Virus record (IMG/VR): IMGVR_UViG_3300042515_001753
Location: 124,001-188,000 of that record
Direction: 5' to 3' (one strand)
Length of the DNA stretch: 64,000 nt
A program made the position numbers and the translations under genes. This document shows positions 4,467 through 52,768 of the stretch, in pieces (the stretch's first letter is position 1; each line of letters opens with the position of its first letter). The notes below the pieces were generated by a model. The model did not search any database, had not been told where the DNA came from, and was given only the letters and a program-made list of their open reading frames with translations.

Positions 4467-4554
4467 CGGGTCGGTTCGTTTGGTATGCTTTAGTCTACAG
4501 GGTCATCGGCGCCGGTCTGGGGCAGCGTGTGCCAGTCTGGCAATTGGTTAGGTA

Positions 4555-4704
4555 TCAGAACTGAATCTCACTTAGAGTAGGATTAGCAGCGGAATCAGGA
4601 CCGACACTATCAGAAACCCCATCAACAATTGAATCAAGAATTTGGAGAATTTGCTCACCATTCGAACCTTTAGCAAGGAGTGAGAGAAGGACATCGCGGG
4701 ACAT
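4555..4704 (-). CDS. small hypothetical protein (49 aa)
   Basis: Own translation MSRDVLLSLLAKGSNGEQILQILDSI... Confidence 0.55.
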   Translation of the reverse strand: MSRDVLLSLLAKGSNGEQILQILDSIVDGVSDSVGPDSAANPTLSEIQF

Positions 4705-4771
4705 AATGTAGAATGAAAAATGTTAATGAAAGTGTGGGAGAAGTTTAGAGTCATTCCCCAGGACTTGAGAT

Positions 4772-5032
4772 TTAGAAGTCGAAAACGTCGCCGTTGATTT
4801 CTGCGCGGTTGATTTTAGGGTCAGTCCATTTCACACCGTCGCGGGTTTCTTTGGCACCACAATCATACATCAATTCCAGCAGTTCTTCATAGCAGCAGAT
4901 ATCACGTTCTTCGATAGCATCCTGAACGTAAGCATCATTCTGAATCCAGAGAGCTACGTTCCAGGTTTCATAATTGGTCCAACCGTTGTAGGTTTGGTCG
5001 GTCAGGCAGGTCTGGTAGGTGGTGACGGTCAT
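4772..5032 (-). CDS. conserved phage hypothetical protein
   Basis: YNGWTNYETWNVALWI motif common in phage early proteins. Confidence 0.65.
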   Translation of the reverse strand: MTVTTYQTCLTDQTYNGWTNYETWNVALWIQNDAYVQDAIEERDICCYEELLELMYDCGAKETRDGVKWTDPKINRAEINGDVFDF

Positions 5033-5106
5033 TTGCTTGGGTTGGTTGGTATGAATCAATTATAAGGGGTGGAGAGGGTGCCATGGGCACCCGATGTGCC
5101 AGTTCC

Positions 5107-5304
5107 TCAGGCGGCACACATCAGGGCGGATTCCATACTCACCTCCCGAACATCCATCTTGGAGTAATCATAACCCTCCTGCTCCTCAAGATACACAAGG
5201 TAAGCATTTGCGGTGGAGAAGCAGTCAAACAAGCGGAGCGATTTGAAGTCCTCACCTTCATAATCCCAACCACCGATGACAGCGTAGACTTTAGTGATTT
5301 GCAT
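5107..5304 (-). CDS. small acidic early protein
   Basis: MQITKVYAVIGGWDYEGE; own promoter cassette. Confidence 0.6.
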   Translation of the reverse strand: MQITKVYAVIGGWDYEGEDFKSLRLFDCFSTANAYLVYLEEQEGYDYSKMDVREVSMESALMCAA

Positions 5305-5373
5305 TTGCTTGGGTTGCGTGGTATGAATCAATTATAAGGGGTGGAGAGGGTGCCAGAGGCACCCGGTGTGCCA

Positions 5374-5541
5374 CTATGCCAGGTGGGCGAACTGTGCCAG
5401 ACTGCTGGGGGCGATGTGGGAGGGGGACCCGCAGGACTTGTAGAAGTCTACCATCCTCTCCGCCTCGTCAAGGGTGCCGAAGAACTGGGAGCGCCACTCG
5501 GTCTGGTTGTAGGGGGTCTGGTAGCGGACTTCGATTCGCAT
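5374..5541 (-). CDS. small hypothetical protein (55 aa)
   Basis: Own translation MRIEVRYQTPYNQTEWRSQFF...; leader and TAGAAT -10 upstream. Confidence 0.6.
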   Translation of the reverse strand: MRIEVRYQTPYNQTEWRSQFFGTLDEAERMVDFYKSCGSPSHIAPSSLAQFAHLA

Positions 5542-5747: not shown

Positions 5748-5770
5748 AAAAAAAGGGGCTAAGTTGCCCC
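5748..5770 (-). terminator. intrinsic terminator
   Basis: GGGGC-AACTTA-GCCCC followed by T7 just after the stop at 5777. Confidence 0.75.
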
Positions 5771-5776
5771 CCTGAT

Positions 5777-6442: not shown

Positions 6443-7345
6443 TTATGCGACCTGAAACCTCCCGTTGTTGAAGTTAGCATAACTGAAGACCTCACGATTG
6501 ACCAGTTTGAACATACCAAACTGATTGGACATTACATAACCTTCGGCATCAATTCGGTCATAACCAAGATAAGCAGCAGGACCCGAATTGCGACAGATAA
6601 AGAGGCAATCTTCCTTGATGGACTTCACTAGTGCCCACAGTCCAATCAGGTTAGGGTCACAATTAAAATCCTCAAACTCTTGGGCAATGATAGCATCACC
6701 GGCACGAATACAGGCATTCAGTTGTTGCTTAATCTTTGCTGCTTGCTTGTCAGAAACAAACTCTACTGTGGTTGCAACTTGCCGGGCAAAGGATACAACC
6801 TCCTCAACATCAGCGAAGGACTCCTGATTGTGGGCGATGTATGCATCAGGTTTGACAAACTTTACGCTGTCGGTGTCATTCCAGATGGCACGATCAGGCA
6901 TCGCCACAGCATCACGCAAATCAGATTCTGCAAAGTAGCAGGTATGCGGAGCAACGATGATTTGCTGAGAAACTACTTCAGGAAACTTGTAAGTGATCGT
7001 GTTGGGAGTATACTCATCAGAACCACCAAACCCAATAAAATCACATTGGTAGACAGTATCTGTGCGAGGAAGATAATCAAAACAAGCGTGAAGAATACGC
7101 GCAACTTCACCCTGATGGTTTGCATCAATTTCTTCATGAGAGTGATTGATTTTGATTTTAACTTTGTTGAATACACTTTTGGTTCCCACGAAATACTTTC
7201 CCGTGGCAGGATTGGTGCCCCAAACAATAGCAGGACTTCCATCAATCTTTACACTCAGGGGTCCGGGATTCACGAACCAATCCAACACGGTCAGGTCGCC
7301 GGTCAGGATAGAATCTTCGGGGTGTTCGAGGTGGGTGTTTTTCAT
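6443..7345 (-). CDS. putative ATP-dependent ligase-like nucleotidyltransferase
   Basis: KIDG (motif I), EGYV (motif IV) and FKLVNR (motif V-like). Confidence 0.5.
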   Translation of the reverse strand: MKNTHLEHPEDSILTGDLTVLDWFVNPGPLSVKIDGSPAIVWGTNPATGKYFVGTKSVFNKVKIKINHSHEEIDANHQGEVARILHACFDYLPRTDTVYQCDFIGFGGSDEYTPNTITYKFPEVVSQQIIVAPHTCYFAESDLRDAVAMPDRAIWNDTDSVKFVKPDAYIAHNQESFADVEEVVSFARQVATTVEFVSDKQAAKIKQQLNACIRAGDAIIAQEFEDFNCDPNLIGLWALVKSIKEDCLFICRNSGPAAYLGYDRIDAEGYVMSNQFGMFKLVNREVFSYANFNNGRFQVA

Positions 7346-7411
7346 ACTGCTATTGTAAGGGGTCAGGAGGGGGTCTGGGGGGAACCGTGTGCCAGTTCCC
7401 CAAGTGTCGCA

Positions 7412-7753: not shown

Positions 7754-7825
7754 TGGTTGGGTTGCGTGGTATGAATCAATTATAAGGGGTCGGAGGGGGC
7801 AGCGGAACCCCCTCTGTGCCACTAG

Positions 7826-8047
7826 TCAGACTGGCACAGCAGTTGCAGATTCTAACAAATCTATGGCAAACTCCTCACCATAAATCTCTGTAATCTCATT
7901 CACAATCTGCTCCTCAGTATAGTCTGCATACTCTGAGGTGATTAAATCAAAGAGCATAATCTCCATAGAATCATTATCTAAACCTTCGATAATATGGTTG
8001 GCATAATTATCAATGAATTGTTGAAATTGTGCTTTGTTGAGTGTCAT
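7826..8047 (-). CDS. small acidic protein
   Basis: D/E-rich; similar to 9428..9619. Confidence 0.6.
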   Translation of the reverse strand: MTLNKAQFQQFIDNYANHIIEGLDNDSMEIMLFDLITSEYADYTEEQIVNEITEIYGEEFAIDLLESATAVPV

Positions 8048-8697: not shown

Positions 8698-8811
8698 CGG
8701 GTTGGTGTCTCAGGTACGAATGTAATATAACAGGGTTTGTGGGGTCTCACAAGGGGGTCTGTGACACTCTACGAACTGGCATAGGAGACCTTGACAAAAC
8801 TAGGATTATAT

Positions 8812-9357: not shown

Positions 9358-9427
9358 TTGGTGAATTGCTTGAGTACGAATGTAGAATAACAGGATTGAG
9401 GCAGGAAGTCTAGGGGTCTTGTGCCAC

Positions 9428-9619
9428 TTATGCCACTGGCACATCCTCCAACAGTTCTGGACTGTATTCTGTAACCTCTGTAATCAGTTCTTCATCAGTA
9501 TAATCGGTAAGATTTTCTACCATAGTATCATAAACAAAACGTTCCATAGTTTTGTAATCCATACTCTCAATCATTTGCTGGACGTAATCTTCAACGAGTT
9601 GGTCACGGTCGAATGTCAT
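9428..9619 (-). CDS. small acidic protein
   Basis: Paralog-like to 7826..8047 (DYTDEELITEVTEY vs DYTEEQIVNEITEIY). Confidence 0.6.
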   Translation of the reverse strand: MTFDRDQLVEDYVQQMIESMDYKTMERFVYDTMVENLTDYTDEELITEVTEYSPELLEDVPVA

Positions 9620-9691
9620 TTGGTGAATTGCTTGAGTACGAATGTAGAATAACAGGTTTTGGGGGATTAATCAACCCCCTTGTGACACTTC

Positions 9692-9904
9692 CTAGACTGT
9701 CACAAACATCGTCTTGTCAGGGTTGCGGTAGATGTTATCACCATACCACACTTCCAACTTCAAAGTGTTACCATAGAAGTTGCTCGGGATGCCATAACGA
9801 AGAAACCCTGAAGTTGTCTTGTAGTGACTAGTCAAACGCTGATTATTCATTCCACACTGATCATAACTGCCATCGGCATTCTGTCGGGTGTAGATAATCT
9901 TCAT
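9692..9904 (-). CDS. small hypothetical protein
   Basis: MKIIYTR start after the promoter cassette. Confidence 0.55.
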   Translation of the reverse strand: MKIIYTRQNADGSYDQCGMNNQRLTSHYKTTSGFLRYGIPSNFYGNTLKLEVWYGDNIYRNPDKTMFVTV

Positions 9905-9953
9905 TTGGATTTGTTTGGTATGAATGTAGAATAACAGGATTGAGGCAGGAAGT

Positions 9954-10139
9954 CTAGGGGTCTTGTGACAGTTCCTCAAGTGGCACAGTATCAATTCTCC
10001 TTGGTGTGTTGGGTGTATACTCTGGATGAGAATTCTCCCATTTGACTAGTTCATTAACCCAATCTTCCTGCCCTAATACATTAACCCAATCTTCCTGCCC
10101 TAATACATTCTTCCAGAAATTATCGTAGTTCATAATCAT
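9954..10139 (-). CDS. small protein with an internal 27-bp tandem duplication
   Basis: NVLGQEDWV twice. Confidence 0.45.
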   Translation of the reverse strand: MIMNYDNFWKNVLGQEDWVNVLGQEDWVNELVKWENSHPEYTPNTPRRIDTVPLEELSQDP

Positions 10140-10342: not shown

Positions 10343-10419
10343 TTGGTGTCTCAGGTATGAATGTAATATATCAGGGATTGTGGAGAACCGCAACCCCCCT
10401 TGTGCCAGTTCTCAGAGTG

Positions 10420-10611
10420 TCACATCACAACTCTGGAAGTATAAGGATTAGTCCTAACTTCCCAACGTTTCGCTGTAGGATACTGACGAAAGATAATCTC
10501 ATCAATCTTCTTCTCTATCCATTTGTTATACTTTTTATAATTGCCAATCTCTTGATTGAGTAGTAGAACATTATACTCTGAATCTTGGACTTGCAGATAC
10601 CAAGTTTGCAT
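10420..10611 (-). CDS. small hypothetical protein
   Basis: ORF with its own cassette. Confidence 0.55.
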   Translation of the reverse strand: MQTWYLQVQDSEYNVLLLNQEIGNYKKYNKWIEKKIDEIIFRQYPTAKRWEVRTNPYTSRVVM

Positions 10612-10699
10612 CGGTGAATTCCTCAGGTATGAATGTAGAATATCAGGGTTTAGGCAGGAAGTCTAGGGGTCTTGTGCCAGTTCGAGAATTGTCACATCA

Positions 10700-10940
10700 T
10701 TATATCCGGATACTAAAAAATCCTCCTATTCTTGATATCGTTTCAAGAACACGAGATAACTATATTCAGTTCGGTAATCTTCGTTTGTTCGCTATATTCG
10801 GCGCCGTGGGAAACCTATAGTTAAACCCTGTCCGCCTAGATGATATTTAAGGGATACTTAGTTTCTTATATTCTGTCAGATTGACTCTGTATCCCGCAGG
10901 AGAGTTCAAGTGCTGCTCTATGATATAAGAACTCAAGTGA
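10700..10940 (-). ncRNA. candidate structured late ncRNA with a pseudoknot
   Basis: No credible ORF; TATAAATA at 10944-10951; several inverted repeats; loop GGGATAC can pair with GTATCCC. Confidence 0.4.
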
Positions 10941-10981
10941 TTTTATTTATATAAGTTTGTGCCAATTAATGAAGTGGCACA

Positions 10982-11306: not shown

Positions 11307-11433
11307 AGCTCTTCGAGATGTGTATGTGTACTAGATGATTGTAGCACATATCTCGACGAGCTGCAAGTGTGTTCTCGACGAGATTGTTGTATGTATATAT
11401 GCGTTCTCGACTAGATTTTGTGTGCTTATGAGT

Positions 11434-11462
11434 ATTCTAGACTAGATTATGAGATTTGTCAA
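11434..11462 (-). promoter_or_regulatory. sigma70 promoter (leftward)
   Basis: TTGACA-N17-TAGAAT. Confidence 0.75.
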
Positions 11463-16965: not shown

Positions 16966-19900
16966 TTATTCTGGTGTCTCATCACTCAAAGAAACCCTGA
17001 GATTATCACCCCCAATATGAAGGTGAAATATCCTTCCATCATTCAAGTATATTCCGCACCAATATACATCTTCCGTCATATTTTCCCAGTGAACCATCTT
17101 CACATCTTCCAACACAAACTCATCAGGATTTTCAGTCATTTTGCCTCCCAGAGATTCCCAATGATACCACATTCGTGAAACCTTCTTGTAGTATCACAAT
17201 AACGACCATTAGATTTCCCAGTCACAACATTTCCAGTTACAAGTGGATGAACGCACAAATCAAATGTGTCCCCAGAACCAGTAATATGAGCAGACCAATC
17301 TTTTTTATAGTGCTTACAATCCTTACATAATTTTATTTCAGTCATTGATAAGGATTGGGTAGATTTTTGACTACTTCAGTAAAGAAAGAAAGACGGTCTT
17401 TGGTGTAAGCAACATCTACATTATGTGTCTCACAGAGTTTCATAATCTTCATAGTCTTTTCGTTGTAAAAAGAATATCCCTCAAATTGCCCATACTCAAC
17501 ATTATCAAGAAGTGATTCCTTCATCACCTCAAAGAGTTGAAAAAGTTCTTGTTGAGAGAGTTCTACTTGTCGTTCAGTTTGTTGGTGCCCGTTGAATGTG
17601 ATTTTCATAGTGTTTCAGCAAAAGATTTAGCATACTCATCATTCACCAGTTTACAGAGTCCCATAATGTCCTGTTTCATTTCAGGTGTTGTTCCTGTCTT
17701 ACAAACCTCATCATAGAAGTTAGTAAGTGAGACTGTGAGAATATTCAGTTGTCGTTGAGTGAGGTTCATTTGATGTTCAAATACTTTTTGTTGGAAATCA
17801 TATGGTCCAGAACTTGAGCAAGTTTCTGCTCATAAGTTGGATTATGATACTTCAAACATTCAACATAAGCATCGTGAAGACGAGCATACAAATCATCCCA
17901 GTGCTGTTTGTTAATGGTGGTCATTTCAATTTACTCCATACAATTCCAAAATCCTTTTCGCAACAACAATAGAAAGTTCTTTGTTGCCGATAGACATATC
18001 TTCGGTGATGTTTTTAGAACCTTCTTCAAGTGCTTTCTCACTTGAACGGATGTAAACTCCCGAATTGTCTGCGTTTAGTTCTACACGATAAACCATTTCC
18101 TCTGCTTCATCGGTGAATTCATAAACATCGGTCAAACTATGAACAATTTGAGTTCCGGAAACGATATTGTAAGGTTGAAAAGTCATTTGGAGAACCTCCT
18201 TTGTGTATAAAAGTATTATAAGGCATCAAAGGGCACCTGTGAAGTGCCCTTGTGCCGGTTTCTCAAGTGTCCTCAAGTCCAAGTTCTAACATTTGCCTTT
18301 GGGTGTTCCTTACAAGCATCCAACACCTCTTCCACAAAGGGAACAAAGTCTTTGTAAGTTCCCCAACCATTAGAAGCATCAAACTGCTTATAGTGTTCTG
18401 GATGAGATTTGAGTTTTAGAAGTCCTGCCTCAAGATGTGGAATAAGTTTATCAGCAGTTGGATTTTCATAAAGGTCATCAGGACGCCACAGACACTTATA
18501 GATGCCTGCTTCTTCTGCCATCGTATTCAGGTTGTGAGTGATGTTTCCAGAATACAACTCAACCTTATGAGGTTCAGGTGCTCCCGTATCAACTTCAATT
18601 TCCAACGAAATATCAAGAGACATAATGTGTTTGTGCTTATGAGACTATTATAAGGCATCCACAGGGGGATTGGTGAGGTCTTGTGCCGGTTCTTCAATCG
18701 TCTCTGTGTCTTCCAGTTCGTGTATAAGTTCCCAAAGGTCTCTACAACTCACTACCATATCACCACATCCAAATTCACGATATTCTTCAAACTCTTCAAT
18801 CACAAACCGAAGTGCGGCGGAGATTACTTTTTCCCTATCGTTCTTTTTGGGACGAAGAGTACAACACATCGTTGCTTCTACAATTCTATCTGCGGGTGAT
18901 AACATTATGCTACACCCTCCGCACTATCTTTGAATTCTTTTACTTTTTTAAGGAATGAAATTGATTGTTGATAAAGTGCCTCAATCAAGTCCTCAATATC
19001 AGCAATCGCAATCTCATTATACTCCCTGTTTAGGTTCTCACAACGCAGAGCATCAATCATAGACTGAAATGCGATAATTTGTTGCTGTTCTGGTGTGATA
19101 GGAGTTCCGTGAGGAAGTCCAGAACATTCAAGATTATGGAAATCATTATACCTTTGAAGCACACGATTACTCTTTTCTCTGCGTTCTGCTTCCTCAAACA
19201 TTTCGTCAGGATAAGGTTCAGTCATAATGCCTCCAGCACCTCAATAATACCCAGTATATCACGAACATTCACAACAAGCAACCCGTGGTCTCCATCTACA
19301 TTATAATTATCATAACCACACTGATTGATTAGTTCTCTCAAAAGAGCAGCATACTCATATCTCACTCTTGCAACCATCGGGTCGTCGTGTCCCTCACGAA
19401 TAAGTTTTCCCAGAGGAACACCACCATCAGAGACCCGGTGTGCGGCATTTAGAAGTTCTTGAGTTTGTTGTTGTGCTTTCAGTTTGCGGAGTTTCTGTGT
19501 TGCTCGTGCCGTGAGATACCTTTTGTTTTCTCGTAAGTTTTGGATTTCTTCTGGATTAAGTAGAAACCCGTCTGATATATTCCCGTATTCTTCAGTCATC
19601 TCTTATATCCTTGAACCATTGGGAAAATTCAATCCACTTTTCATCATTTACTTTTTTTTGAAGTTCAGCAGCAGGGTAGTTTTTGTTTATTTTATGACAC
19701 CAAGCAGTCATCTCATCAATAATAAGAACCCGATGCCTATTAAGCATTTCGCAGATTTGAGCATCAGTCATTCAGTTTTGCCTCAAGTTCGGCAATCTTC
19801 AGGTAGAGTTCCTCCAAGTGTGATGTGAGTTTATATGCGTTGATTTCACACATCTCATAGACACCATCGGTTGTGAGGTCTCCAAAGATGGTTCTCCAGT

Positions 19901-20095: not shown

Positions 20096-20172
20096 TGTCT
20101 GTGTGTATGAAAGTATTATACGACAAAGGGCACCCGTTTTCAAGTGCCCGTGTTCCAGTTCGTAAAGTGTCC

Positions 20173-34373: not shown

Positions 34374-34443
34374 TTACCTTATTTGTTTAACAGATATATC
34401 ATAAGTTATTTTAGAGAAAAAGTCAAGAAGAATGTGACACCTA

Positions 34444-36810: not shown

Positions 36811-36836
36811 GTTCCGTTCCCTTGATTACCTTGTTA

Positions 36837-37313
36837 TTATAGGGCATTCATCAGGCGGTTGGGGAACCACCATGCCACTTTGGGAGCTGGCACACCCTGT
36901 TTCTCAATTAAGTACTCCAGATATAGGGTTTCTTCTTGCTCCCGTGCCTCAATTTCGTGCCCTTGATACCAATATTCATAATCTTCCATGCAATCTTTAC
37001 CATAATACATTTTTCCGCGTTTCTGGCGGAGAGAACCTACTACCCACTGCCTCAGGTGAGTCAGTTCATGAAAAAGAGTTTTTATATACAACTCTTCTGA
37101 CATATGAGTATTCAGTTCAATCAGGAACTCTCTGGGGCGATAGGTTTCACCCAGAACATCACACCAACCATAAACGTGCTCACGCCTCAATCCACGATGA
37201 ACAATCTCCACATAGATTTTGTGGCGTGGGAGGAACTTATTCAGAAACCAAGAGGCAACATCCTCACAGGTCCGCTTGCGATAACCGTATCCACTGTGAA
37301 AAATGGTACTCAT
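36837..37313 (-). CDS. zincin-like metallopeptidase (HExxH)
   Basis: TLFHELTHLRQW and a downstream HEIEA. Confidence 0.65.
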   Translation of the reverse strand: MSTIFHSGYGYRKRTCEDVASWFLNKFLPRHKIYVEIVHRGLRREHVYGWCDVLGETYRPREFLIELNTHMSEELYIKTLFHELTHLRQWVVGSLRQKRGKMYYGKDCMEDYEYWYQGHEIEAREQEETLYLEYLIEKQGVPAPKVAWWFPNRLMNAL

Positions 37314-38623: not shown

Positions 38624-38843
38624 CGGTTTGCTTGCTTATGAGGTTATTATAGGGCATCCAGAGGGGTCTGGGGTCCCCTGTGTGCCAGTTCTTAACGTGA
38701 CACAGGCGGCGGAAGCTTCGGAGCATTCATTTCTACAGTAGTTTTCTGTAGATTAAGCATCATACCATCTAGGGCACCGGCAACTGGACTGAATCCAATC
38801 GTTGCAACAATAATACCGAAGATGGTTCCGGAAATGAAGTTAA

Positions 38844-39251: not shown

Positions 39252-39276
39252 CGGAGGCGTTTCGTTGATTACCTTG

Positions 39277-40146
39277 TTAGTATAGGGCATCCAGCAGCGG
39301 CGTGGAGGGGTCTTGTACCACTTCCTGAACTGGCACAGAATTCTTGATTCGTTCTTCGGCAATCTTATAGTAGTTCTCATCCATTTCAATACCAATAAAG
39401 TTTCTGTTAGTGTTCATACAGGCAACGCCAGTTGTACCAGAACCCATACAATTATCCAAGATAGTTTCTCCCTCGTTACTGTATGTTTTTATGAGATATT
39501 CCATCAAAGCAACTGGTTTTTGTGTGGGGTGAACAACATTTCTATCCAATCCAAACTCAATAATTTCTGATGGATAGTTAGTGTATTTTTGCTCATATTC
39601 AGTCTCATGAAGTAACTTATTGTTCTTACCCATGTGCTCTGGATTATGTAAGAAATTACCAAGACGCTTTGCGTTGTTTTTTTTCTTGACGTTCTTTTCA
39701 ATCAATCCCTGCGGATTGTATGTCATATTTTTTCCATTTTTTGATGCTGCGGCAGCTCCACCAGAAGAGAATACAACAACGTCTTCAGTACATTTCATAG
39801 GACGATAGTTGGCAAGAAGAAATCCAGTTGTCTTCTTCTTTTTCCAAATCCATTCATACTTAAACCATTCTAGATTACTCAAGATGAGTTGACTGGTGAA
39901 AGGTTGATCTGCTGTCAATACAACAGTTCCTAACGGTTTTAGAATGCGTTTGTATTGTTCCCACAATTGATCAAGTGGAATTACAGTATCCCAACCCAAG
40001 AGTCGATTACTTCCTTTACTTTCTACACCCCTTCTATCGCTAGTTCCATAGGGAAGATCGCAGAGGATCAGATCAACCGACCCATCTGCGATCTTGTTCA
40101 TTTCAACCAGACAATCACCGAACAGGAGTTGTGGAGATAATTGCAT
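39277..40146 (-). CDS. N6A/N4C DNA methyltransferase (beta class)
   Basis: GDCL, DLPYG, HPTQKP, LDNCMGSGTT. Confidence 0.9.
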   Translation of the reverse strand: MQLSPQLLFGDCLVEMNKIADGSVDLILCDLPYGTSDRRGVESKGSNRLLGWDTVIPLDQLWEQYKRILKPLGTVVLTADQPFTSQLILSNLEWFKYEWIWKKKKTTGFLLANYRPMKCTEDVVVFSSGGAAAASKNGKNMTYNPQGLIEKNVKKKNNAKRLGNFLHNPEHMGKNNKLLHETEYEQKYTNYPSEIIEFGLDRNVVHPTQKPVALMEYLIKTYSNEGETILDNCMGSGTTGVACMNTNRNFIGIEMDENYYKIAEERIKNSVPVQEVVQDPSTPLLDALY

Positions 40147-40744: not shown

Positions 40745-40837
40745 TTTTTAAAAATCCTCTACGTGGAGGGTTTGATGTTTGACTCCCATATTATAGACCC
40801 TCCATCAACCAAAGTCAAGGGGGGTCTTGTGTCAGTT

Positions 40838-41683
40838 TCAGGACTGCCACACGGCAATCAGTTCATTTGCCTTTTTTCTGCTAGAACTGTTTGCAGAAAT
40901 GGACCTTGACACCTGAATTGAATGGATTTCGGCATTTTTATAAAGTTCTCTTGTAACGGGAACATCGTGATTAGAAAGTATCACTTTAATTCCACGATTT
41001 ACCAGAGTTTCTGCTAAATCTCTCAATTCAATCTGCTGTTCGTGAGTAAATCCATCTGTTGCATAATTGGTAAAGTTAGAAGTCTCAGATGCAGGAACAT
41101 ATGGAGGGTCAAAGTAAACAACATCACCTTCGCCTAAAGATTCATACAGCAATTCGTTAGAGAATGTGGTATTGGTGAACTCAACACATCTATTATTAAA
41201 TGTGGCAATAAAGTCCAACATTTCTTTTTCAGGAAAGTGTGCCTTTGTATTTTCTATCTTCCCAGTCTTTGAGTTCTTATTCTCTTTACCATAGGGAACA
41301 TTAAACTCATTCTTGGAATTATAACGACAAAGACCATTAAAGGCGTGTTTATTCAAGTACAGGAACAGTTTAGCTCGCTCTCTGGCATCAGTTTCAGAAT
41401 TAAACCGATTTCTCATTTCAATATACTTTTGTCTGCTATTATTATCATCAACAAATATCTGGGTACAGTCAGATACAAACTCAATATCAATATTTGTGTA
41501 AAGAAAATACAAATCCGAATTAATATCATTCAGAATATATTCATCTGCATGTACATTTAGTGCTACAGACAGACTTCCACCAAAAGGCTCACAATATCTG
41601 GTGGGAGTTCCAATTAGAGGTAAAAGATGGGGCAGGACCCTAAACTTATTTCCTGCCCACTTTAATGGAGATTTAATCATCAT
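40838..41683 (-). CDS. dam: Dam-family DNA adenine methyltransferase
   Basis: SPLKWAGNK, YCEPFGG, NDIN, FNGLCRYNS..FNVPYG, DPPY. Confidence 0.85.
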   Translation of the reverse strand: MMIKSPLKWAGNKFRVLPHLLPLIGTPTRYCEPFGGSLSVALNVHADEYILNDINSDLYFLYTNIDIEFVSDCTQIFVDDNNSRQKYIEMRNRFNSETDARERAKLFLYLNKHAFNGLCRYNSKNEFNVPYGKENKNSKTGKIENTKAHFPEKEMLDFIATFNNRCVEFTNTTFSNELLYESLGEGDVVYFDPPYVPASETSNFTNYATDGFTHEQQIELRDLAETLVNRGIKVILSNHDVPVTRELYKNAEIHSIQVSRSISANSSSRKKANELIAVWQS

Positions 41684-46235: not shown

Positions 46236-48922
46236 AATACCTCCCAGTGTGCGTCAGCTTTGTCACCAAAACGATTTACACCCTCACGAGTTGATACCCA
46301 AAAAAAGTATTTGCGATTTGCTGATGCGAGAAACAACTCACCACCAGTATCCTGTTCTACAACACACAGAGGATTACCCTCCATCGTGTTAGCAAGACGG
46401 TTCTTTGCCTTACTGGATTTGGGTTTGACTGTGACTAATCGGCGGTTCATCGGTCTGTTTTAGATATACTCATTATAGGGGTAGTTTCACCCATTTTGGG
46501 GGTGGTTGTGCCAGTTCTTCAATTGGATTAGTCATTCCGATTTTAGCATAGAAAAATACATCTTATAGTATTTTTTCTTGAGTTGAGTTATGATCTCAAA
46601 GTCTTCTTCATCAATACAATCAAGTAAGTATGAAACTCCCTCAAGCTCACTCAATAATCTTGCTATTGTTGTTGAGTTCAGTTGCTTTACATTCCATTTC
46701 TGCCTGAAGTTCTCTTGCGAGTTTTTCATACTTCCATTTCATCATCAGGTTTGTAATAGGATTTTTTGGATGAAGTCTTATCATCCATAACATTCTTTCG
46801 GTATTGATTTTTATAATTTTGAAAATAAGAGTCAAATATACTGCTATATTTTCATCTACCCATATAAGGTATGCAAGTATTCCAAATATTACCACACAGG
46901 CAGATTGAAATGGAGTCATTTTAGTCCCAAAAAATTTCTAGTGATTTGAGAGCACGAAAGAATTGCCCTGCATAATATGTATCAGGATTAGACATCTGCT
47001 GTAATTCTTTGATGTATGCAATGATACCTTCTGTGGCAGGATTTATCTCAAAATACTCATAAAACCGAAAGACATCAAACTTCTCATTATATTGGAACAT
47101 CGTATTCCAGTTTTCTTGATATCCTTTGGTATAAACATCTTCTCTTTCAATATTATTGAGATTTATGAATTCAAGAGGAATCAGTTTTGAATCATCTTCA
47201 CTTCCTTCTGGTTCATCATACTTCATTTCATCAAATAAATCCTTCCCTGTCCTTTTGTTAATCATACGAAGACCATCAGAATACTTTTGATGAAGGTCTA
47301 AATCCTGAACAATCTCAGACTTTTTCCATTCTTTAGACTCATTCAGAAATCTCTGCTTTGTGCTGTAGTATTCATCATCAGTATCAGATGCACGAAAAAC
47401 AAGGTTGATACGATAGCAACCTTGTTCGTGATATGATTTCCACTTTCTTTGAGAAAAGTGAAGTATTTCAAATGAGGATTGAGTCATTATTCCATTTTAT
47501 AAGCGAGTATATTTAGAACCCGACTGCCTTAGATTTCTTTTTAGGTTTATCAAGGGCATTTACATAATCCAAATAATCGGGGATTTGATTGTGAACGAAC
47601 CAATACCCCTGAACGCCCTCCCAATCGTCAAAAAATACGGTTTTGCCACTTTTCAGGACAAGTTCGTAGTTATGACGGTCATATGGGACATCAGAGGTTT
47701 GTTGAAATACTTCCATCACTGAACTCCATCAAACTGACGAACGAACCGAAGACACTGTTTAAATTTTTGGAATTCAGCATCCGAAAAATTATCAGAAGCA
47801 TAAGGAATGCCCACAATTGCGGCACAAACCCGATTCACATTCACAGTAATCATCATCTCATTTGCCGATGCCGGTTGAATGAACAGAAGAGGCAGAAGAA
47901 AGACAATCTTTTTCATAGATAGTTCTCAAGACTGGATGATGAACTCCGCTTTCGTGGAGTCTGTTTGACTTTTTTCTGAATGTAATCCTTGGCAGTTGTG
48001 AGATTGTTTGAGGTATGAACCTGTTCACCATTACAGATAATGACGAACTTATTACCCCAAGGAACTGCTGCCCATTTTCCGTCTTTAGTTACATAACCGG
48101 CAGGGTCTGAAGGTTTATTATTCAGAATATCATAATTAGGAGTATTTGGTATTTTAGGGGTCAGCATGTGACATTCACAACTCTGGCGTTTGGATTTCGT
48201 GCCTCAATAACTCTTTTTGCCTCAGCAGGATTGTTAGCATATACTTCTTCTGTTTGGCGTTGATTACCGGCAATAAAAATCACCCGATACTTCATTTGAG
48301 TTTCCTCTTTTGGTTACTTGTGTATTATAGCAGGAAAGGGGTCCGTTGAGAACCCCCTGTGCCAGTTTGAAAAGTGTCTTAAGGTTTAAGGAATAAGATC
48401 AGAATTACCTCCATCAATCCAAAGATTATCATCTACTTGAATATAACCAATTTCATTTACATTTTCATAATGTTCTTGGAGACGGGCAACCTTATTTTTC
48501 AATCCAATACTTTCGATAACATATCCTTCAAGTGTTTGAGTCGTAACATCCGGATCATCACTAAGTTCTTCCAAATGATGACGTTCGTTATTATCTACAA
48601 GAGGTGCAAGAGTTTCCCAAGTGTTACCAAAACCATTTGCAAGACAAGGATTACAGTTCAACTTATACATTAAATTAGATACCATCACCATAATATTTTT
48701 AGCATTTGGATTATCAAGTGTATATTCAAATGCTTCAGAAAATCCAAGTCCAGATTGACCCGTTCGAATTACATCAATTTGATTACCATCATCATCATAG
48801 TTATCACTATAATCAATTGATTGCTCACAAAGTTCTGGTTCGTTGCGAAGTAATTCCCAACAAAACTCAAGAATATTGCAAAGTGTATCATATTCAGTTG
48901 GAGACAAAATTGGTTTAGTCAT
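46232..48922 (-). other. hypothetical ORFs (46232-46450, 46647-46919, 46921-47487, 47513-47719, 47716-47916, 47913-48167, 48386-48922)
   Basis: ORF track. Confidence 0.55.
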
Positions 48923-48988
48923 AATGTTTTGAAGTGCCTGGATATTATAGCAGGAAAGGGGTCCCTTGAGAACCCCCTGTGCCAGTTT

Positions 48989-49480
48989 TTAATCTGGACA
49001 CCCAGCACCATATTTTATGGCAACTGAAAAACGGTGTCTATCATAAAAAGATGTTGCTTTATGAAGTAAACTTGCATTAAAAGCAACTAGACGATTTGGA
49101 ATAGGCAGAATTCCATAAAGTCTTTCATCAATAAAAAATTGAGTTTCTCCACCATCATCCAAATCCCAAGTTTCATTTGGATAATATAAAAATGTAACTT
49201 CTTCACTACTTCCATCAGTATGAAAATAAGGATTTTCTGATGGAGCAAAACAATTTATGTACATCCTGTACAATTTGAGATTTGTAACAAACTCTTTAGT
49301 TTTAGTTTTAAATAAATTATAAATTGGTTCGGTTTCTGAAATGTTATGAACCATTCCAGTAGGCGGATGATTTTCATCATCTGCTTCACCATAGGTATAC
49401 ACAGAAGATTTACAATATTCCAAAACAAAATCAAATTGTTCTTGTGATAGAAAATTATCGGTCACTTCAATCATATACAC
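48989..49480 (-). CDS. 2OG-Fe(II) oxygenase
   Basis: HTD, GGET.F, H, R.S. Confidence 0.85.
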   Translation of the reverse strand: MYMIEVTDNFLSQEQFDFVLEYCKSSVYTYGEADDENHPPTGMVHNISETEPIYNLFKTKTKEFVTNLKLYRMYINCFAPSENPYFHTDGSSEEVTFLYYPNETWDLDDGGETQFFIDERLYGILPIPNRLVAFNASLLHKATSFYDRHRFSVAIKYGAGCPD

Positions 49481-50061
49481 TCCTCATAATGAATACCGTA
49501 CTTTATGGCAATTGAAAAGCGATGCCGATTACGAAAAGGTGTTGCCGTATGTTCTAAATTAGCATCAAATGAAATTAAACGATTTGGAATGGGTGGAATT
49601 CCATAAAATCCCCCATCAATAAAAAACTTGGTTTCTCCACCATCATCTAAGTCCCAAGTTTCATTTGGATAATATAGAAATGTAGTTCCAACCTCTCCAT
49701 CAGTATGAAAATAAGACTTTTCTAATGCGGCAAAACAATTGATGTAAATTCTTGTAATATCTTTTGTTTTATACTGTGTAAATTGAGTTTCTATTGAACT
49801 TGAAAATAGATCAAACAATTTTTTTTGATTAACAATTTTTGAAGGGTCTCCTCCAATTAAATGTGATTCATCTGATAATGGATTATCCTCAGTGTGATGA
49901 TAAACTTCGTGAACTAATCCAGTACAGTATTTAAAATTAGTTGGAGAATTAGAATCTGAACCGCCACCTTCTCCATAAAAATAAGATGCTTTGATACAAT
50001 AGTCAAGAATAAAAAGATGTTCTTCTTCAGTAAAAAAATTATCATAAACATCAATACTCAT
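49471..50061 (-). CDS. 2OG-Fe(II) oxygenase (paralog of the previous gene)
   Basis: Shares TFLYYPNETWDLDDGGET; HTD...H...R.S. Confidence 0.85.
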   Translation of the reverse strand: MSIDVYDNFFTEEEHLFILDYCIKASYFYGEGGGSDSNSPTNFKYCTGLVHEVYHHTEDNPLSDESHLIGGDPSKIVNQKKLFDLFSSSIETQFTQYKTKDITRIYINCFAALEKSYFHTDGEVGTTFLYYPNETWDLDDGGETKFFIDGGFYGIPPIPNRLISFDANLEHTATPFRNRHRFSIAIKYGIHYEECI

Positions 50062-50714
50062 ATTGATTCATCTCCGTACTGCAAAACCTTAATATTCATA
50101 GCAATTGTTATACGAGGATAATCTTCAGTATAAGCACAAGGTTCTACCGAATGTCTAAGATACGATGGAAACATTATAAAATCTCCCTCTTGAATTTTTG
50201 GTTTATATTTACTATCATATTGATTTCTATTAAACTCTAGTGAAAAACATCTTAATTGCTCTAAAGGGTCTCTAAAAATAGGAGGTTTATGTCTAGTTTT
50301 ATCAAATGAAAGAAAATGAATGCAAGAGAAGTGAGTGCTTCTAAAAATATTTCCCAGATGATCATGGTCTTCCTGATATTCTCCATTAGTATAGCAATTG
50401 TACCATATCTCATCAATCATAATTTGATATGTTGAGTCAAAAAAACTGTCAAGACATTTGGCATATTTTTTTTCTAAAATTGATTGATATGTATTGTCTT
50501 CTCCAAAAAATATTTCTTCTCCTGGTTTTTCCCCAGAAAAAGATGTTTTAAGTTTATTAGTAAACCATCCTTCGGGAATTGAAAGTTCCTCAGAATCCTT
50601 AAGAATCTTTGGTACTAACATTTCTTTTATTTCATCATTATTTTCAATTTTACTGTGAAAAAATGATACTGGAAAAATAGGAATCCTACTTTGGTTATCA
50701 AAATCTTTACCCAT
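50058..50714 (-). CDS. putative 2OG-Fe(II) oxygenase
   Basis: QEDHDH, FPSYLRHSV, RITIAMN. Confidence 0.75.
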   Translation of the reverse strand: MGKDFDNQSRIPIFPVSFFHSKIENNDEIKEMLVPKILKDSEELSIPEGWFTNKLKTSFSGEKPGEEIFFGEDNTYQSILEKKYAKCLDSFFDSTYQIMIDEIWYNCYTNGEYQEDHDHLGNIFRSTHFSCIHFLSFDKTRHKPPIFRDPLEQLRCFSLEFNRNQYDSKYKPKIQEGDFIMFPSYLRHSVEPCAYTEDYPRITIAMNIKVLQYGDESI

Positions 50715-51399
50715 CTATATCATCCTCAATTTTTACTACAATATTTCCAGAAATACTTATCCTATAGTCGTCAGAAGTATAAAATGGATAAACACTATGA
50801 TTTAACCAGGATGGAAACATTACCATAGTTCCCTCCCAAGTTTTATCTATAAACAAAGGCAAAGTCTCCATATTTCCATTTGGGGAAATAAAATGAAATT
50901 CAAATAAAGAATTTAAGGATTCATTTGAATTCCTACAATTTTTATGATCTAATTCATTAGTTAAATCATAAGGAATACGCATCCAAATTACAAATGAATA
51001 ATCTCCTGCGTGAGAATGTCGTGGATTAAACTCATATTTTTTTTGCAAGTTAATCCAAAGACTTTCAAGTTCATAATTAATTTCTCTCTCAAAAAAGTTA
51101 TTATCGTGGTCAAATTTTTTAACGGGATTTAGTTGCTCGTCTTCTACTACCCGAAAATAACTTTTAGCAACATCAATAGAAAAATTCTCAATTAAATGTG
51201 AGGATTCAGTAGAAAGTTTATATTCTTCTTCAATATTTCCTGCCAAATAATGATTCCATTTTATAAGATTAGATTTATTCTCTAAAATAAAATCAATATC
51301 TTCATTTATTTTTTCAAGAATATCTTCTGGAAGTTTTGTTCTAACATAATATAAAGATGTAATTGGTTCGGCATATATTTTAAGTTGTTCTTCATCCAT
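50707..51399 (-). CDS. putative 2OG-Fe(II) oxygenase
   Basis: EFNPRHSH, FPSWLNHSVYPF, RISISGN. Confidence 0.75.
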   Translation of the reverse strand: MDEEQLKIYAEPITSLYYVRTKLPEDILEKINEDIDFILENKSNLIKWNHYLAGNIEEEYKLSTESSHLIENFSIDVAKSYFRVVEDEQLNPVKKFDHDNNFFEREINYELESLWINLQKKYEFNPRHSHAGDYSFVIWMRIPYDLTNELDHKNCRNSNESLNSLFEFHFISPNGNMETLPLFIDKTWEGTMVMFPSWLNHSVYPFYTSDDYRISISGNIVVKIEDDIDG

Positions 51400-51432
51400 A
51401 ATTAATTTGTTCTATAAGTTAATTATATCACA

Positions 51433-52668
51433 TCAGCGATTGATTGTGCTGACTGCAACGTCTCCCTGCTTAAAGATGATGTCCACCACGTTCTGGACCT
51501 TCTGTGCGGTGCCCGTAGATGCCTTGTCAAAGGTCGGGCAGATGACCAGACCATAGGATTTGGTGTAGGAGTCCAAAGCACCTGCCTGAAGGGCACCAGA
51601 GCGGATTCCAGCGGCATCTGCAGGGTGAAGGCGCAGCGTCCGCCCAACGGTCTGACCGATGCCCACGATGTCCATAGAGCGCATAAACACGACCGCTTCC
51701 AGAGCAGAGATGTTGATGCCTTCTGCCAAAATGCTGTGATGAAGAACCACAAACTTCTTGTCTGCATCCTTACCCCATTCGTTGAGAGTGTCAAAGAACA
51801 CCTCACGATTCACCTTATCACCATCAATAAATGCACCGTGCTTAGAAGTGATGTGCATCACAGAATAACCTTCCTCTGCCAGTTGTTCGGCAAAGTCAGT
51901 TTCGGAAAGCAAACCAATAATGTGCTTGGTTGCCTTGGCACAAATCAGAATCTTATCAACGGGATTGTCCTGAATGGTCTGAAGAAGATACTCACAGTCA
52001 CGCTGAGCAATATCCTCACCCTTGACAGAAAGGCGCATTTGAGTTGCAATCACCTTAGGAGGAATGATGTAACCGTTCTGAACCAGTTGAGGAGCAGGAA
52101 CCTTAGCGATGATGCTACCGTAGACCTCAGTATCATTCATACCTGCCTTACCAATTACATTACTGTATTTGGGAGTGGCGGTGAAGAAGAAACAACGCTC
52201 TGCCTCTGCACTGAAATACTCTACCGCAGGGAAGAAATGGCGTTGAATGCTATTGTGCGCCTCATCAAACAAAGTAGTGTTGACTTTAATATCAGCACGT
52301 TGAAGTTGCTGTAGAGAATTATAGGTAGTGAAGATAAGTTTGTGACCTTGTGTTTGTTCGTACCAAGTACGAATTACACTAGGTTTCGTGGTGCTAAAAT
52401 GTCTAGTTTCTCCCGAGTGGATATGAAGAACAGAAGCGTTGGTGATGAACTCCAAATATTCACTAGAAAGTTGTTCTGCCAACAAAATACGAGGACTAAC
52501 AACTACAATAGTCTTAGGAGCATCAGACTTGAATTGCTCCATCGCATCAAAGATACCAACGTTGGTCTTACCACCACCGGTAGGAAACACACAGATACCT
52601 TTAGAATGCTGTTGCAGAGCATTCAGGGCATCTTGCTGGTGGGGACGGAGTTGAATCACGTTTCTCAT
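51433..52668 (-). CDS. SF2 DEAH helicase (ResIII-like)
   Basis: LRPHQ, PTGGGKT, DEAH, TATP, LAEGIN, QTVGRTLR. Confidence 0.9.
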   Translation of the reverse strand: MRNVIQLRPHQQDALNALQQHSKGICVFPTGGGKTNVGIFDAMEQFKSDAPKTIVVVSPRILLAEQLSSEYLEFITNASVLHIHSGETRHFSTTKPSVIRTWYEQTQGHKLIFTTYNSLQQLQRADIKVNTTLFDEAHNSIQRHFFPAVEYFSAEAERCFFFTATPKYSNVIGKAGMNDTEVYGSIIAKVPAPQLVQNGYIIPPKVIATQMRLSVKGEDIAQRDCEYLLQTIQDNPVDKILICAKATKHIIGLLSETDFAEQLAEEGYSVMHITSKHGAFIDGDKVNREVFFDTLNEWGKDADKKFVVLHHSILAEGINISALEAVVFMRSMDIVGIGQTVGRTLRLHPADAAGIRSGALQAGALDSYTKSYGLVICPTFDKASTGTAQKVQNVVDIIFKQGDVAVSTINR

Positions 52669-52768
52669 TTGCTTATAGGATTATTATACAGCAAAAAAGG
52701 GGTCTGTGCGGACCCCTGTGCCAGTTCTTAAAGTGTCTTAGTATCTCATCTTCAACGGAGACAAACCT

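Follow-up and report, generated by a model that had tools for sequence, protein, structure and literature searches.

About 30 predicted promoters in a lake cyanophage lack a usable -35 element and carry in its place a 24-bp dyad, and the same dyad lies at the same distance upstream of the Cyano-1/Yfr2 small-RNA genes across cyanobacteria. The half-sites of the dyad are those of the unique yfr2-promoter palindrome of Cyanobiaceae, which we identify with CGRE1, the site shown experimentally to bind and respond to the GntR regulator PMM1637/PlmA. This implies that the phage probably borrows this host activator for genes that are probably early, although binding of PlmA to the phage box, the transcription start sites and the timing are inferred. 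The occurrence of the dyad at cellular yfr2 promoters is new here.

The window analysed (64,000 nt; positions 124,001 to 188,000 of IMG/VR record IMGVR_UViG_3300042515_001753) is part of a 234-kb T4-like cyanomyovirus from lake metagenomes, and its genes in this region run on the minus strand. We first tested whether a palindromic box recurs at a fixed distance from a -10, as proposed in a sequence-only reading of the window, and this observation was confirmed. The pattern given in that reading, searched with up to 3 mismatches, matched 20 times, compared to 0 matches in 100 dinucleotide shuffles. In gene orientation, the box is TGTG(A/C)CA(C/G)TT-N4-AA(C/G)TG(G/T)CACA, and the promoter-proximal half, AACTGGCACA, is the better conserved. 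A two-block position weight matrix (PWM; box plus -10 block) found 30 minus-strand units from 4528 to 52740, which are the limits given in the sequence-only reading, whereas the reversed genome gave 0 (Table 1). Four of the 30 units (4528, 10958, 32859 and 34433) are weak, and only about 4-5 further units lie in the other 170 kb of the genome. Each unit consists of the dyad, a GC-rich spacer of 28-30 nt, a TATAAT-like -10 and a start codon about 15-20 nt after the predicted transcription start. The coordinate pairs 18220/18251, 22531/22561, 30330/30360 and 52688/52717, cited as examples in the sequence-only reading, are the -10 and box edges on the plus strand.

The distance from the box end to an exact TATAAT peaks at 28-30 nt in this genome (16 of 20 cases). 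In 304 units from related contigs, a set that was partly seeded with a 28-30 nt constraint, the distance is 29 nt in 168, 30 nt in 86 and 28 nt in 39. By contrast, two units outside the window place the box 5 bp closer, abutting a -35, which is half a helical turn away from the main class. The best match to TTGACA is 4 of 6 or fewer in 24 of 28 boxed promoters, and the four near-consensus sigma-70 promoters that the sequence-only reading described as lacking the box are present as claimed.

Table 1. Boxed promoter units and unboxed comparator promoters in the window (positions of the 64,000-nt stretch)
Span	Strand	Feature	Box	-10 or promoter sequence	Spacer	Remarks
4485..4551	-	Boxed promoter unit, weak	4528-4551	TAGACT 4492-4497	30 nt	Box score 19.5; poor -10
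5052..5118	-	Boxed promoter unit	5095-5118	TATAAT 5059-5064	30 nt	Hairpin in spacer
5324..5390	-	Boxed promoter unit	5367-5390	TATAAT 5331-5336		Degenerate distal half of box
7345..7411	-	Boxed promoter unit	7388-7411	TACAAT 7352-7357		Predicted +1 falls on the ATG of the DUF6267 gene, so the mRNA would be leaderless
7772..7838	-	Boxed promoter unit	7815-7838	TATAAT 7779-7784		
8717..8783	-	Boxed promoter unit	8760-8783	TATATT 8724-8729		
9377..9443	-	Boxed promoter unit	9420-9443	TGT-TATTCT 9384-9389		Palindromic box
9639..9704	-	Boxed promoter unit	9681-9704	TATTCT 9646-9651	29 nt	Palindromic box
9921..9987	-	Boxed promoter unit	9964-9987	TATTCT 9928-9933		Palindromic box
10358..10424	-	Boxed promoter unit	10401-10424	TATATT 10365-10370		
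10630..10696	-	Boxed promoter unit	10673-10696	TATTCT 10637-10642		
10913..10981	-	Palindromic box, doubtful as a promoter	10958-10981	TATCAT, weak	32 nt	No ORF close by
18208..18274	-	Boxed promoter unit	18251-18274	TATAAT 18215-18220		Hairpin plus T-run in spacer; GATGCC; ATG at 18186
18640..18705	-	Boxed promoter unit	18682-18705	TATAAT 18647-18652		
20108..20174	-	Boxed promoter unit	20151-20174	TATAAT 20115-20120		Terminator-like hairpin in spacer
22519..22584	-	Boxed promoter unit	22561-22584	TATAAT 22526-22531		
24616..24681	-	Boxed promoter unit	24658-24681	TATAAT 24623-24628		ATG at 24599; metatranscriptome contigs diverge at its distal edge, 24678-24680
26437..26502	-	Boxed promoter unit	26479-26502	TATAAT 26444-26449		
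30318..30383	-	Boxed promoter unit	30360-30383	TATAAT 30325-30330		ATG at 30299
32816..32882	-	Boxed unit, weaker	32859-32882	TATACT 32823-32828		Lies inside an ORF
34391..34456	-	Boxed unit, weak	34433-34456	TATGAT 34398-34403		
35937..36002	-	Boxed promoter unit	35979-36002	TATAAT 35944-35949		
36829..36894	-	Boxed promoter unit	36871-36894	TATAAT 36836-36841		
38639..38704	-	Boxed promoter unit	38681-38704	TATAAT 38646-38651		
39272..39337	-	Boxed promoter unit	39314-39337	TATACT 39279-39284		
40783..40851	-	Boxed promoter unit	40828-40851	TATAAT 40790-40795	32 nt	Also has a -35-like TTGACT
46465..46530	-	Boxed promoter unit	46507-46530	TATAAT 46472-46477		
48317..48381	-	Boxed promoter unit	48358-48381	TATAAT 48324-48329	28 nt	Hairpin plus T-run
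48937..49001	-	Boxed promoter unit	48978-49001	TATAAT 48944-48949		Hairpin plus T-run
52676..52740	-	Boxed promoter unit	52717-52740	TATAAT 52683-52688		Upstream of the 411-aa helicase gene; GC hairpin followed by a run of six T
2154..2183	-	Unboxed sigma-70-type promoter (comparator)		TTGACA-N17-TATGAT		
11433..11462	-	Unboxed sigma-70-type promoter (comparator)		TTGACA-N17-TAGAAT		
62788..62817	-	Unboxed sigma-70-type promoter (comparator)		TTGACT-N17-TATAAT		Initial region like that of the boxed promoters
63455..63484	-	Unboxed consensus promoter (comparator)		TTGACA-N17-TATAAT		

We next tested whether the element occurs in other phages. The same architecture was found in S-PM2, S-CRM01, S-SRM01, P-SSM2, P-HM2, P-TIM40, Syn9 and many IMG/VR contigs, many of which carry several units each. 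The element is conserved across Kyanoviridae: a search for the proximal half followed by N27-31 and TAnnnT gave 15 matches in S-CRM01, 16 in P-SSM2, 8 in P-HM2, 7 in P-TIM40 and 2 in Syn9, with 0 in every reversed control. Likewise, PWM hits numbered 21 in S-PM2, 8 in Syn9 and 38 in the genome studied here, with 0 in the controls.

A genome scan for the dyad revealed a cellular counterpart. At least 120 loci were found where about 17 were expected by our estimate, mostly in Cyanobacteria and Acidobacteria. In cyanobacteria, the box lies about 40 nt upstream of the Cyano-1 RNA (RF01701), whereas in Acidobacteria it lies at leaderless genes. The PWM derived from the phage boxes exceeded the 99th control percentile in 15 of 30 Cyano-1 promoters across the phylum, always 37-44 nt before the start of the RNA model, and in 7 of 28 Cyanobiaceae promoters. 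In both the phage, with the match counts given above, and host yfr2 genes, promoters carry either a -35 or a box. The Yfr2a promoter is very strong and light-stimulated in Synechocystis (PMC2662882).

Several results link the box to PlmA. The palindrome AACTG(G/T)CAC-N1-2-GTG(A/C)CAGTT occurs once per genome in 8 of 41 Cyanobiaceae genomes, compared to 0 in controls, and where a Cyano-1 hit was listed beside it, it lies 49-50 nt upstream of that hit. Its two halves are the two halves of the phage box. This palindrome matches the description of CGRE1, which binds PMM1637/PlmA in pull-down and EMSA experiments; binding is lost with R50A, and PlmA raises expression in an E. coli reporter (PMC6191309). 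However, our identification rests on the verbal description of CGRE1 rather than on its logo, one detail of that description (a 'GTGxCAC' centre) fits imperfectly, and the reported -55 to -57 start implies a transcription start upstream of the Rfam model start. Two Cyanobiaceae genomes have a single GntR gene each, which is plmA. Acidobacteria encode PlmA-like proteins with a conserved wHTH, and in 17 box loci the plmA-like gene is adjacent to the box, usually with the box 10-60 nt after its stop codon; by contrast, published papers call PlmA exclusive to cyanobacteria and CGRE1 restricted to marine picocyanobacteria. Long palindromes with GT/AC far from the centre are typical of the YtrA/MocR-related GntR branch, to which PlmA is close (PMC4494728). 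Finally, domain searches of the phage genome gave no GntR hit and no MotA hit, the latter in a search that lacked a positive control.

Taken together, these results favor, with somewhat better than even confidence, a model in which each unit is a promoter read by host RNA polymerase with its primary sigma factor, having a strong -10 (TATAAT or TGn-TATTCT), no usable -35, and the 24-bp dyad at about -65 to -42. In this view, the dyad would be an operator for the host's PlmA-type GntR regulator, which would bind as a dimer or a higher oligomer and recruit or stabilise the polymerase. The phage would in effect have copied the box-type promoter of the host's abundant, light- and nitrogen-stress-induced Yfr2 sRNA genes and placed about 30 copies in front of its small-ORF hyperplastic region, most likely its early genes. 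As some spacers contain terminator-like hairpins, the units would also work as compact terminator/promoter cassettes between genes and as breakpoints for gene shuffling. The element, its fixed spacing and its spread among T4-like cyanophages are established by the analysis, as are its identity in sequence and geometry with cellular yfr2 promoters, the half-sites shared with the Cyanobiaceae palindrome that we identify with CGRE1, and the linkage of the box to plmA-like genes in Acidobacteria. In contrast, we infer that PlmA binds the inverted, 4-nt-spaced arrangement used by the phage, that binding activates transcription, where +1 lies, and that timing is early; metatranscriptome contigs run through the units and give no start sites. 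A further caution is that the half-sites of the yfr2-promoter palindrome are everted with a 1-2 nt centre, such that one dimer geometry may not fit both arrangements, and that GntR regulators are more often repressors than activators.

The interpretation offered by the sequence-only reading, that a dimeric regulator centred near -53 defines a middle-like class with no recognisable MotA in the window, was only partly supported. The box is a real dyad-symmetric, protein-type site whose variable dyad positions do not covary; it is coupled at a fixed distance to a -10 in promoters without a -35, which is the architecture of an activator-dependent promoter class; and its centre is near -53 if +1 lies 7 nt after the -10. 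However, a phage middle-like class with an unrecognised MotA was not supported. A phage-encoded dimeric regulator, packaged in the virion or made early, remains conceivable, because T4 uses MotA/AsiA at promoters that lack a -35 and the window encodes many small proteins of unknown function, but it is unlikely. The identical box and spacing occur in uninfected cyanobacteria and Acidobacteria, no GntR domain was found in the phage, and the element is shared by phages with very different accessory gene sets. A host factor, and with it probably early timing, fits better.

Recognition by a host factor other than PlmA is less likely than the PlmA model but is the strongest of the alternatives. Candidates are another winged-helix or HTH regulator shared by Cyanobacteria and Acidobacteria, or a part of the polymerase such as the alpha C-terminal domains, in which case PlmA would bind only the everted palindrome. 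The box and its N30-to-(-10) geometry occur in phyla said to lack PlmA, the half-site arrangement differs from that of the yfr2-promoter palindrome, and the box occupies the position of an UP element. Against this reading are the identical half-sites, the 17 acidobacterial loci with adjacent plmA-like genes, and the conservation of the wHTH contact motif between the two phyla; moreover, a GC-containing, sequence-specific dyad is unlike known A/T-rich UP elements. A repressive operator, by which host PlmA or a phage protein would shut off promoters driven by the -10 alone, for example as an early-to-middle switch or under certain host nitrogen or light states, is improbable. Consistent with it, GntR regulators are commonly repressors (PMC4494728), the -10 hexamers are consensus, and in some Synechococcus yfr2 promoters the palindrome overlaps the core promoter, with a position of -20 noted in MIT9313 (PMC6191309). 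However, a site centred near -53 does not occlude the polymerase, the -35 is lacking where the box is present, and PMM1637 raised, and did not lower, yfr2 and yfr4 promoter output. Least likely is that the units are mainly PeSL-type recombination cassettes or RNA elements, such as a 3' hairpin or terminator of the upstream gene, with no role of the box in initiation. Contigs from four metatranscriptomes diverge at the distal box edge, with joints connecting different cassettes, and 13 of the 30 window spacers fold better than shuffled versions, and 7 end with a T-run. Nevertheless, the spacers differ in sequence while their length is held at 28-30 nt, which duplication alone does not explain; dyad positions 5/20 and 8/17 are complementary no more often than column frequencies predict, implying no hairpin selection; and in cells the box lies upstream of the RNA start.

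The closest known system is control of yfr2 promoters by CGRE1 and PMM1637 (PlmA) in marine picocyanobacteria (Lambrecht et al., 2018; PMC6191309). Both involve the same 9-10-nt half-sites, AACTG(G/T)CAC and GTG(A/C)CAGTT, in a palindromic site upstream of a -10 in promoters of a strongly expressed transcript, with the H half-site at nearly the same distance from the RNA start, and activation by a GntR/PlmA dimer has been demonstrated for CGRE1. The phage half-sites are instead inverted around a 4-nt centre (H-N4-H') rather than everted (H'-N-H), and the box is present about 30 times in a phage genome rather than once per host genome. The box-type Cyano-1/Yfr2 promoters of other cyanobacteria found here share the H-N4-H' dyad, the 29-30 nt to a TAnnnT -10 and the lack of a -35, but are cellular, number one to a few per genome and drive an sRNA; we found no description of them in the papers searched.

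The sequence-only reading also drew a parallel to PeSL promoter-early/stem-loop cassettes, which are found in RB49, phi1, T4/PST and KVP40/nt-1 (PMC2839356, PMC4122927), and this parallel holds only in part. The units are compact, repeated regulatory cassettes between small ORFs in a hyperplastic region, some with terminator-like hairpins, and show signs of cassette-mediated shuffling. However, PeSLs are defined by a sigma-70 -35 element, have near-consensus -35 and -10 elements and have no upstream dyad, whereas here the -35 is missing, the hairpin, when present, occupies the -35 region, and a dyad, the putative operator, is added. T4 middle promoters, with a MotA box at -30 and AsiA, likewise lack a -35 and have a good -10, and they depend on an activator site, as is inferred for the boxed promoters, but the site here differs in sequence and position (-53 against -30) and is dyad-symmetric, no motA was found, and the element pre-exists in host genomes. 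The cis-element may be the novel regulatory element reported for early genes of Syn9 (Doron et al., 2016), as Syn9 carries about 8 boxed promoters in its small-ORF region at 48-53 kb and P-TIM40 carries 7; no paper in the literature searched links that element to PlmA or Yfr2. Finally, NtcA and PhoB boxes in cyanophage promoters (reportedly, Sullivan et al., 2010; Zeng and Chisholm, 2012) wire a phage promoter to a host transcription factor, as is inferred here, but those are single sites at a few auxiliary genes, whereas here a whole promoter class of about 30 units would be involved.

The window comprises bases 124001-188000 of a 233,886-bp IMG/VR virus record whose DNA is found in many lake metagenomes. 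The nearest GenBank relatives are freshwater and marine Synechococcus myoviruses, and S-SRM01 is 82% identical over about 400 bp. The genes run on the minus strand, and from 4.5 to 53 kb they are mostly small ORFs, together with two DNA methyltransferases, a helicase, and a phosphoesterase, which is the kind of hyperplastic region that carries early genes in T4-like phages. Other features of the window and of the remaining genome are collected in the table.

Coordinates of features in the window (and, where stated, elsewhere in the phage genome)
Feature	Position	Strand	Description
Boxed promoter units	4528-52740	minus	30 units found by the two-block PWM; four are weak
G+C-rich block	4000-11000		49% G+C against 35-39% elsewhere; boxes fully palindromic; -10 TGn-TATTCT/TATATT; spacer and leader nearly identical at 9420, 9964 and 10673; may be a separately acquired or recently duplicated module
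Possible leaderless unit	7345-7411		Predicted +1 coincides with the ATG of the 300-aa DUF6267 gene; mRNA would be leaderless, like those of the acidobacterial box-driven genes
Class B units	18215-52688		GATGCC conserved at -19 to -14, just upstream of TATAAT; also present in S-PM2 and in IMG/VR relatives; not the usual TGn extended -10
Second conserved leader type	35919-35949, 36809-36841, 39252-39284, 63455 region		TATAAT-(T/A)ACAAGGTAATCAA; shared by boxed and unboxed promoters; also in Syn9 and in IMG/VR contigs
T4-type late-promoter octamers	10951, 21027, 31956, 35170, 62487	minus	TATAAATA; all five on the gene strand, none on the plus strand
Probable tail-fibre gene	55820-61381		1853-aa protein with a C-terminal endosialidase-chaperone (Peptidase_S74) domain
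tRNA-Met gene	62818-62892		Next to the unboxed sigma-70 promoter at 62817
Units with closer box	30992 and 39418 (genome positions, outside the window)		Box abuts a consensus TTGACA -35, 24 nt from the -10; 5 bp (half a helical turn) closer than in the main class

We first tested whether the palindromic box described in the sequence-only reading is real. With up to 3 mismatches allowed, the pattern matched 20 times, compared to 0 matches in shuffled sequences, and in gene orientation the element is TGTG(A/C)CA(C/G)TT-N4-AA(C/G)TG(G/T)CACA. The box is followed by 28-30 nt and then by TATAAT, or by TATTCT or TATATT in the 4.5-11 kb block; about 6 nt after the -10 comes a conserved CATA-type start region, and a start codon lies 14-21 nt further on. 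A two-block PWM recovered the 30 minus-strand units in the window but none in the reversed genome, and only about five more units lie in the remaining 170 kb. When no constraint was placed on spacing, exact TATAAT lay 28-30 nt after the proximal half in 16 of 20 cases in this genome. The -35 region of the boxed promoters is GC-rich and matches TTGACA poorly. By contrast, the four unboxed promoters that the sequence-only reading had named are near-consensus sigma-70 promoters with the same -10 and start region, so that box and -35 look like alternatives. Thus, the observation of a box held at a fixed distance from a -10 was borne out.

The conservation of the box implies a protein site rather than a hairpin. 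In 298 distinct boxes that were selected only on the proximal TG(G/T)CACA and the -10, the distal half is conserved independently (G4 0.68, C6 0.93, A7 0.86, T9 0.79, T10 0.71), and the two variable dyad pairs (5/20 and 8/17) are complementary no more often than their column frequencies predict. The spacers differ in sequence, but their length is held. Thirteen of the 30 window spacers fold markedly better than shuffled versions (z of -2.4 or lower) and seven end in a T-run, which suggests that some units may also terminate the upstream gene.

We next examined how widely the element is distributed among phages. A scan of IMG/VR returned many contigs with 4-9 units each. PWM hits numbered 21 in S-PM2, 8 in Syn9, and 38 in this genome, with 0 in the reversed controls, and the proximal half followed by N27-31 and TAnnnT gave 15 matches in S-CRM01, 16 in P-SSM2, 8 in P-HM2, and 7 in P-TIM40, again with 0 in controls. 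S-SRM01 has 6 exact matches. In Syn9, the units sit in the small-ORF and helicase block at 48-53 kb, and in S-PM2 one unit coincides with a "stem-loop" noted by Puxty et al., who did not recognise a cassette there (PMC4503421).

A counterpart of the box was found in cellular genomes. Scanning one genome per prokaryotic species for the dyad gave at least 120 loci, compared to about 17 that we estimate by chance, and Acidobacteriota and Cyanobacteria dominate the list. Perfect copies also occur in Ktedonobacter, Desulfosporosinus, and Patescibacteria (two, two, and three sequences, respectively), and some of the copies in these other phyla lie inside larger palindromes. In cyanobacteria, the box lies about 40 nt upstream of Cyano-1 RNA (RF01701), whose 5' end, GTGTGAGGAG, is the Yfr2 motif complementary to Yfr1 (PMC6778093). 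Across a phylum-wide sample, the phage-derived box PWM exceeded the 99th control percentile at 15 of 30 Cyano-1 promoters, always 37-44 nt before the model start, and the box-to-(-10) distance is 29-30 nt, as in the phage. The other promoters in the sample mostly carry an ordinary TTGCCA -35 with an extended -10. We found no description of the box-type Yfr2 promoter in the papers that could be searched. Five genomes of 1.6-2.0 Mb in the phylum sample had no Yfr2 and are probably not Prochlorococcus. No Yfr2-like RNA is encoded by the phage.

In Acidobacteria, the box is followed about 30 nt later by a TAnnnT, and start codons of ORFs of at least 80 aa pile up 41-43 nt after the box (26 of 122), which indicates leaderless mRNAs. 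Pfam searches of the genes downstream of acidobacterial boxes showed mostly secreted or outer-membrane proteins of unknown function and no regulator, and Rfam searches of these loci gave nothing consistent next to the box, only one Acido-Lenti-1 hit 110 nt away.

To ask which factor might bind the box, we compared it with CGRE1, a 21-22-nt palindrome that Lambrecht et al. found in yfr2 promoters of Prochlorococcus and marine Synechococcus (PMC6191309). The GntR/PlmA-type regulator PMM1637 was pulled down with CGRE1, EMSA binding was lost in the R50A mutant, and expression was higher with the wild-type protein in an E. coli reporter. In 41 Cyanobiaceae genomes, the palindrome AACTG(G/T)CAC-N1-2-GTG(A/C)CAGTT occurs once per genome in eight, compared to 0 in controls, and where a Cyano-1 hit was listed beside it, it lies 49-50 nt upstream of that hit. 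By contrast, reading the published verbal description of CGRE1 as GTTG-N13-CAAC gave matches only at chance level, and this form was abandoned. The enriched palindrome fits CGRE1 in length, uniqueness, the GTTG/GTTA flank, and the one-nucleotide difference between variants, although we identified CGRE1 from the text and not from a logo, and the published TSS position implies that Prochlorococcus Yfr2 starts upstream of the Rfam model. The palindrome consists of the same two half-sites as the phage box in the opposite order. Many picocyanobacterial yfr2 promoters also show the phage-type H-N4-H' arrangement of half-sites in degenerate form, at the phage's distance from the -10. Two Cyanobiaceae genomes have one GntR gene each, which is plmA and is 51% identical to the Anabaena plmA-type gene.

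Independent comparative support for PlmA came from Acidobacteria, even though PlmA has been described as exclusive to cyanobacteria. Terracidiphilus and Pyrinomonadaceae genomes encode PlmA-like proteins of 329 and 318 aa, whose wHTH is 43-45% identical to that of cyanobacterial PlmA, with a conserved LPST(R)-LA-G(I/L)H-NT-S-Y motif, and one of them aligns over 260 residues with Anabaena PlmA at E = 1e-19. In 17 box loci, such a gene is adjacent to the box, typically with the box 10-60 nt after its stop codon, followed by about 30 nt, a -10, and a leaderless gene for a secreted protein. This is the co-localisation usually used to assign a regulator to its motif. Moreover, GntR regulators of the YtrA/MocR-related branch, to which PlmA is close, have long palindromes with GT/AC far from the centre (PMC4494728). 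The phage genome itself gave no GntR or MotA hit, although the search for MotA (PF09114) gave no positive in the control genomes either.

Taken together, these results lead us to propose that host RNA polymerase with its primary sigma factor recognises the -10, and that a PlmA dimer or oligomer bound at about -65 to -42 supplies the contact that the missing -35 would give. The phage would thereby reuse the architecture of a very strong, light-stimulated host promoter (PMC2662882). Because the proposed factor is present before infection, the class is most likely early, and the unboxed sigma-70 promoters would be a separate class. PlmA associates with PII-PipX (PMC5083789), and its targets rise in high light and late nitrogen starvation; phage early transcription could therefore follow host physiological state. 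The element, its fixed spacing, and its occurrence in phage and cellular promoters are read directly from sequence, whereas binding by PlmA, activation, the position of +1, and early timing are all inferred. The half-site order and spacing also differ between the phage box and the yfr2-promoter palindrome. The interpretation in the sequence-only reading, of a dimeric regulator serving a middle-like promoter class, was thus supported only in part: a dyad-symmetric protein site in promoters lacking a -35 fits our results, but a middle-like class is less likely than an early one.

If this view is correct, it bears on how T4-like cyanophages start transcription without MotA/AsiA, which has been an open question since their first genomes were sequenced. 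A distinct regulatory element is reported for Syn9 early genes (Doron 2016, ISME J), for which we know of no named factor, and the box may already be that element. No paper in the literature that could be searched connects it, or any cyanophage promoter, with PlmA, CGRE1, or Yfr2. Tying a pan-cyanomyovirus promoter element to a specific, purifiable host regulator makes the question directly testable by EMSA, reporter assays, and PlmA depletion, suggests a mechanism by which infection success could depend on light and nitrogen status, and gives a rule for annotating early promoters in cyanophage metagenomes. It also defines the likely operator of PlmA outside marine picocyanobacteria and reveals PlmA-like regulons in Acidobacteria. 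A further reading, which is possible but which we hold only tentatively, is that T4-like cyanophages of both marine and fresh waters wire their early programme to host PlmA, as a partner of the PII-PipX nitrogen/energy sensor, so that take-over of the cell would be gated by the host's light and carbon/nitrogen state through mimicry of the yfr2 sRNA promoter. In this reading, the operator and regulator pair is older than the cyanobacteria, and the "cyanobacteria-only" PlmA subfamily and its operator would need redefining.

Other identities for the box did not fit its motif or its position. A T4 MotA-dependent middle promoter is not supported, because no MotA box TGCTT was found near -30. TGGCAC, as in a sigma-54 promoter (TGGCAC-N5-TTGC at -24/-12), is present, but no TTGC follows it, it lies about 30 nt upstream of a sigma-70 -10, and cyanobacteria are not known to have sigma-54. 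An NtcA-activated promoter would have GTA-N8-TAC centred at -41.5, whereas the box is TGTG-N16-CACA centred near -53. The CRP (TGTGA-N6-TCACA), LexA, and DnaA-box readings likewise fit neither the motif nor its spacing.

The boxed units resemble PeSL cassettes in being clustered, as 30 of about 35 units lie in 48 kb of small ORFs. Contigs from four lake and river metatranscriptomes, which carry no strand or end information and so map no transcription starts, cover the 22-27 kb stretch. Several contigs from different runs match up to 24678-24680, the distal edge of one box, and then continue into unrelated sequence, and joints link positions just downstream of different units (22439 to 24599, 24612 to 26502, and 23651 to 26426). 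These contig joints and loose ends fit related phages that carry different genes between the same cassettes, as proposed for PeSLs, but assembly across repeats could produce the same picture. PeSLs have a near-consensus sigma-70 -35 and -10; in the boxed units the -10 is consensus, but the -35 matches 4 of 6 positions or fewer in 24 of 28 units. PeSLs also have a stem-loop terminator within the cassette; of the 30 window spacers, the 13 that fold and the seven that carry a T-run bear on this feature. Compared with the CGRE1-type promoter, the boxed promoters share the half-sites AACTG(G/T)CAC and GTG(A/C)CAGTT, a site upstream of a -10 at a fixed distance in a promoter lacking a -35, and a host lineage that encodes PlmA, but instead of a 21-22-nt everted palindrome with a 1-2-nt centre, the phage and the non-picocyanobacterial promoters use the inverted order with a 4-nt centre.
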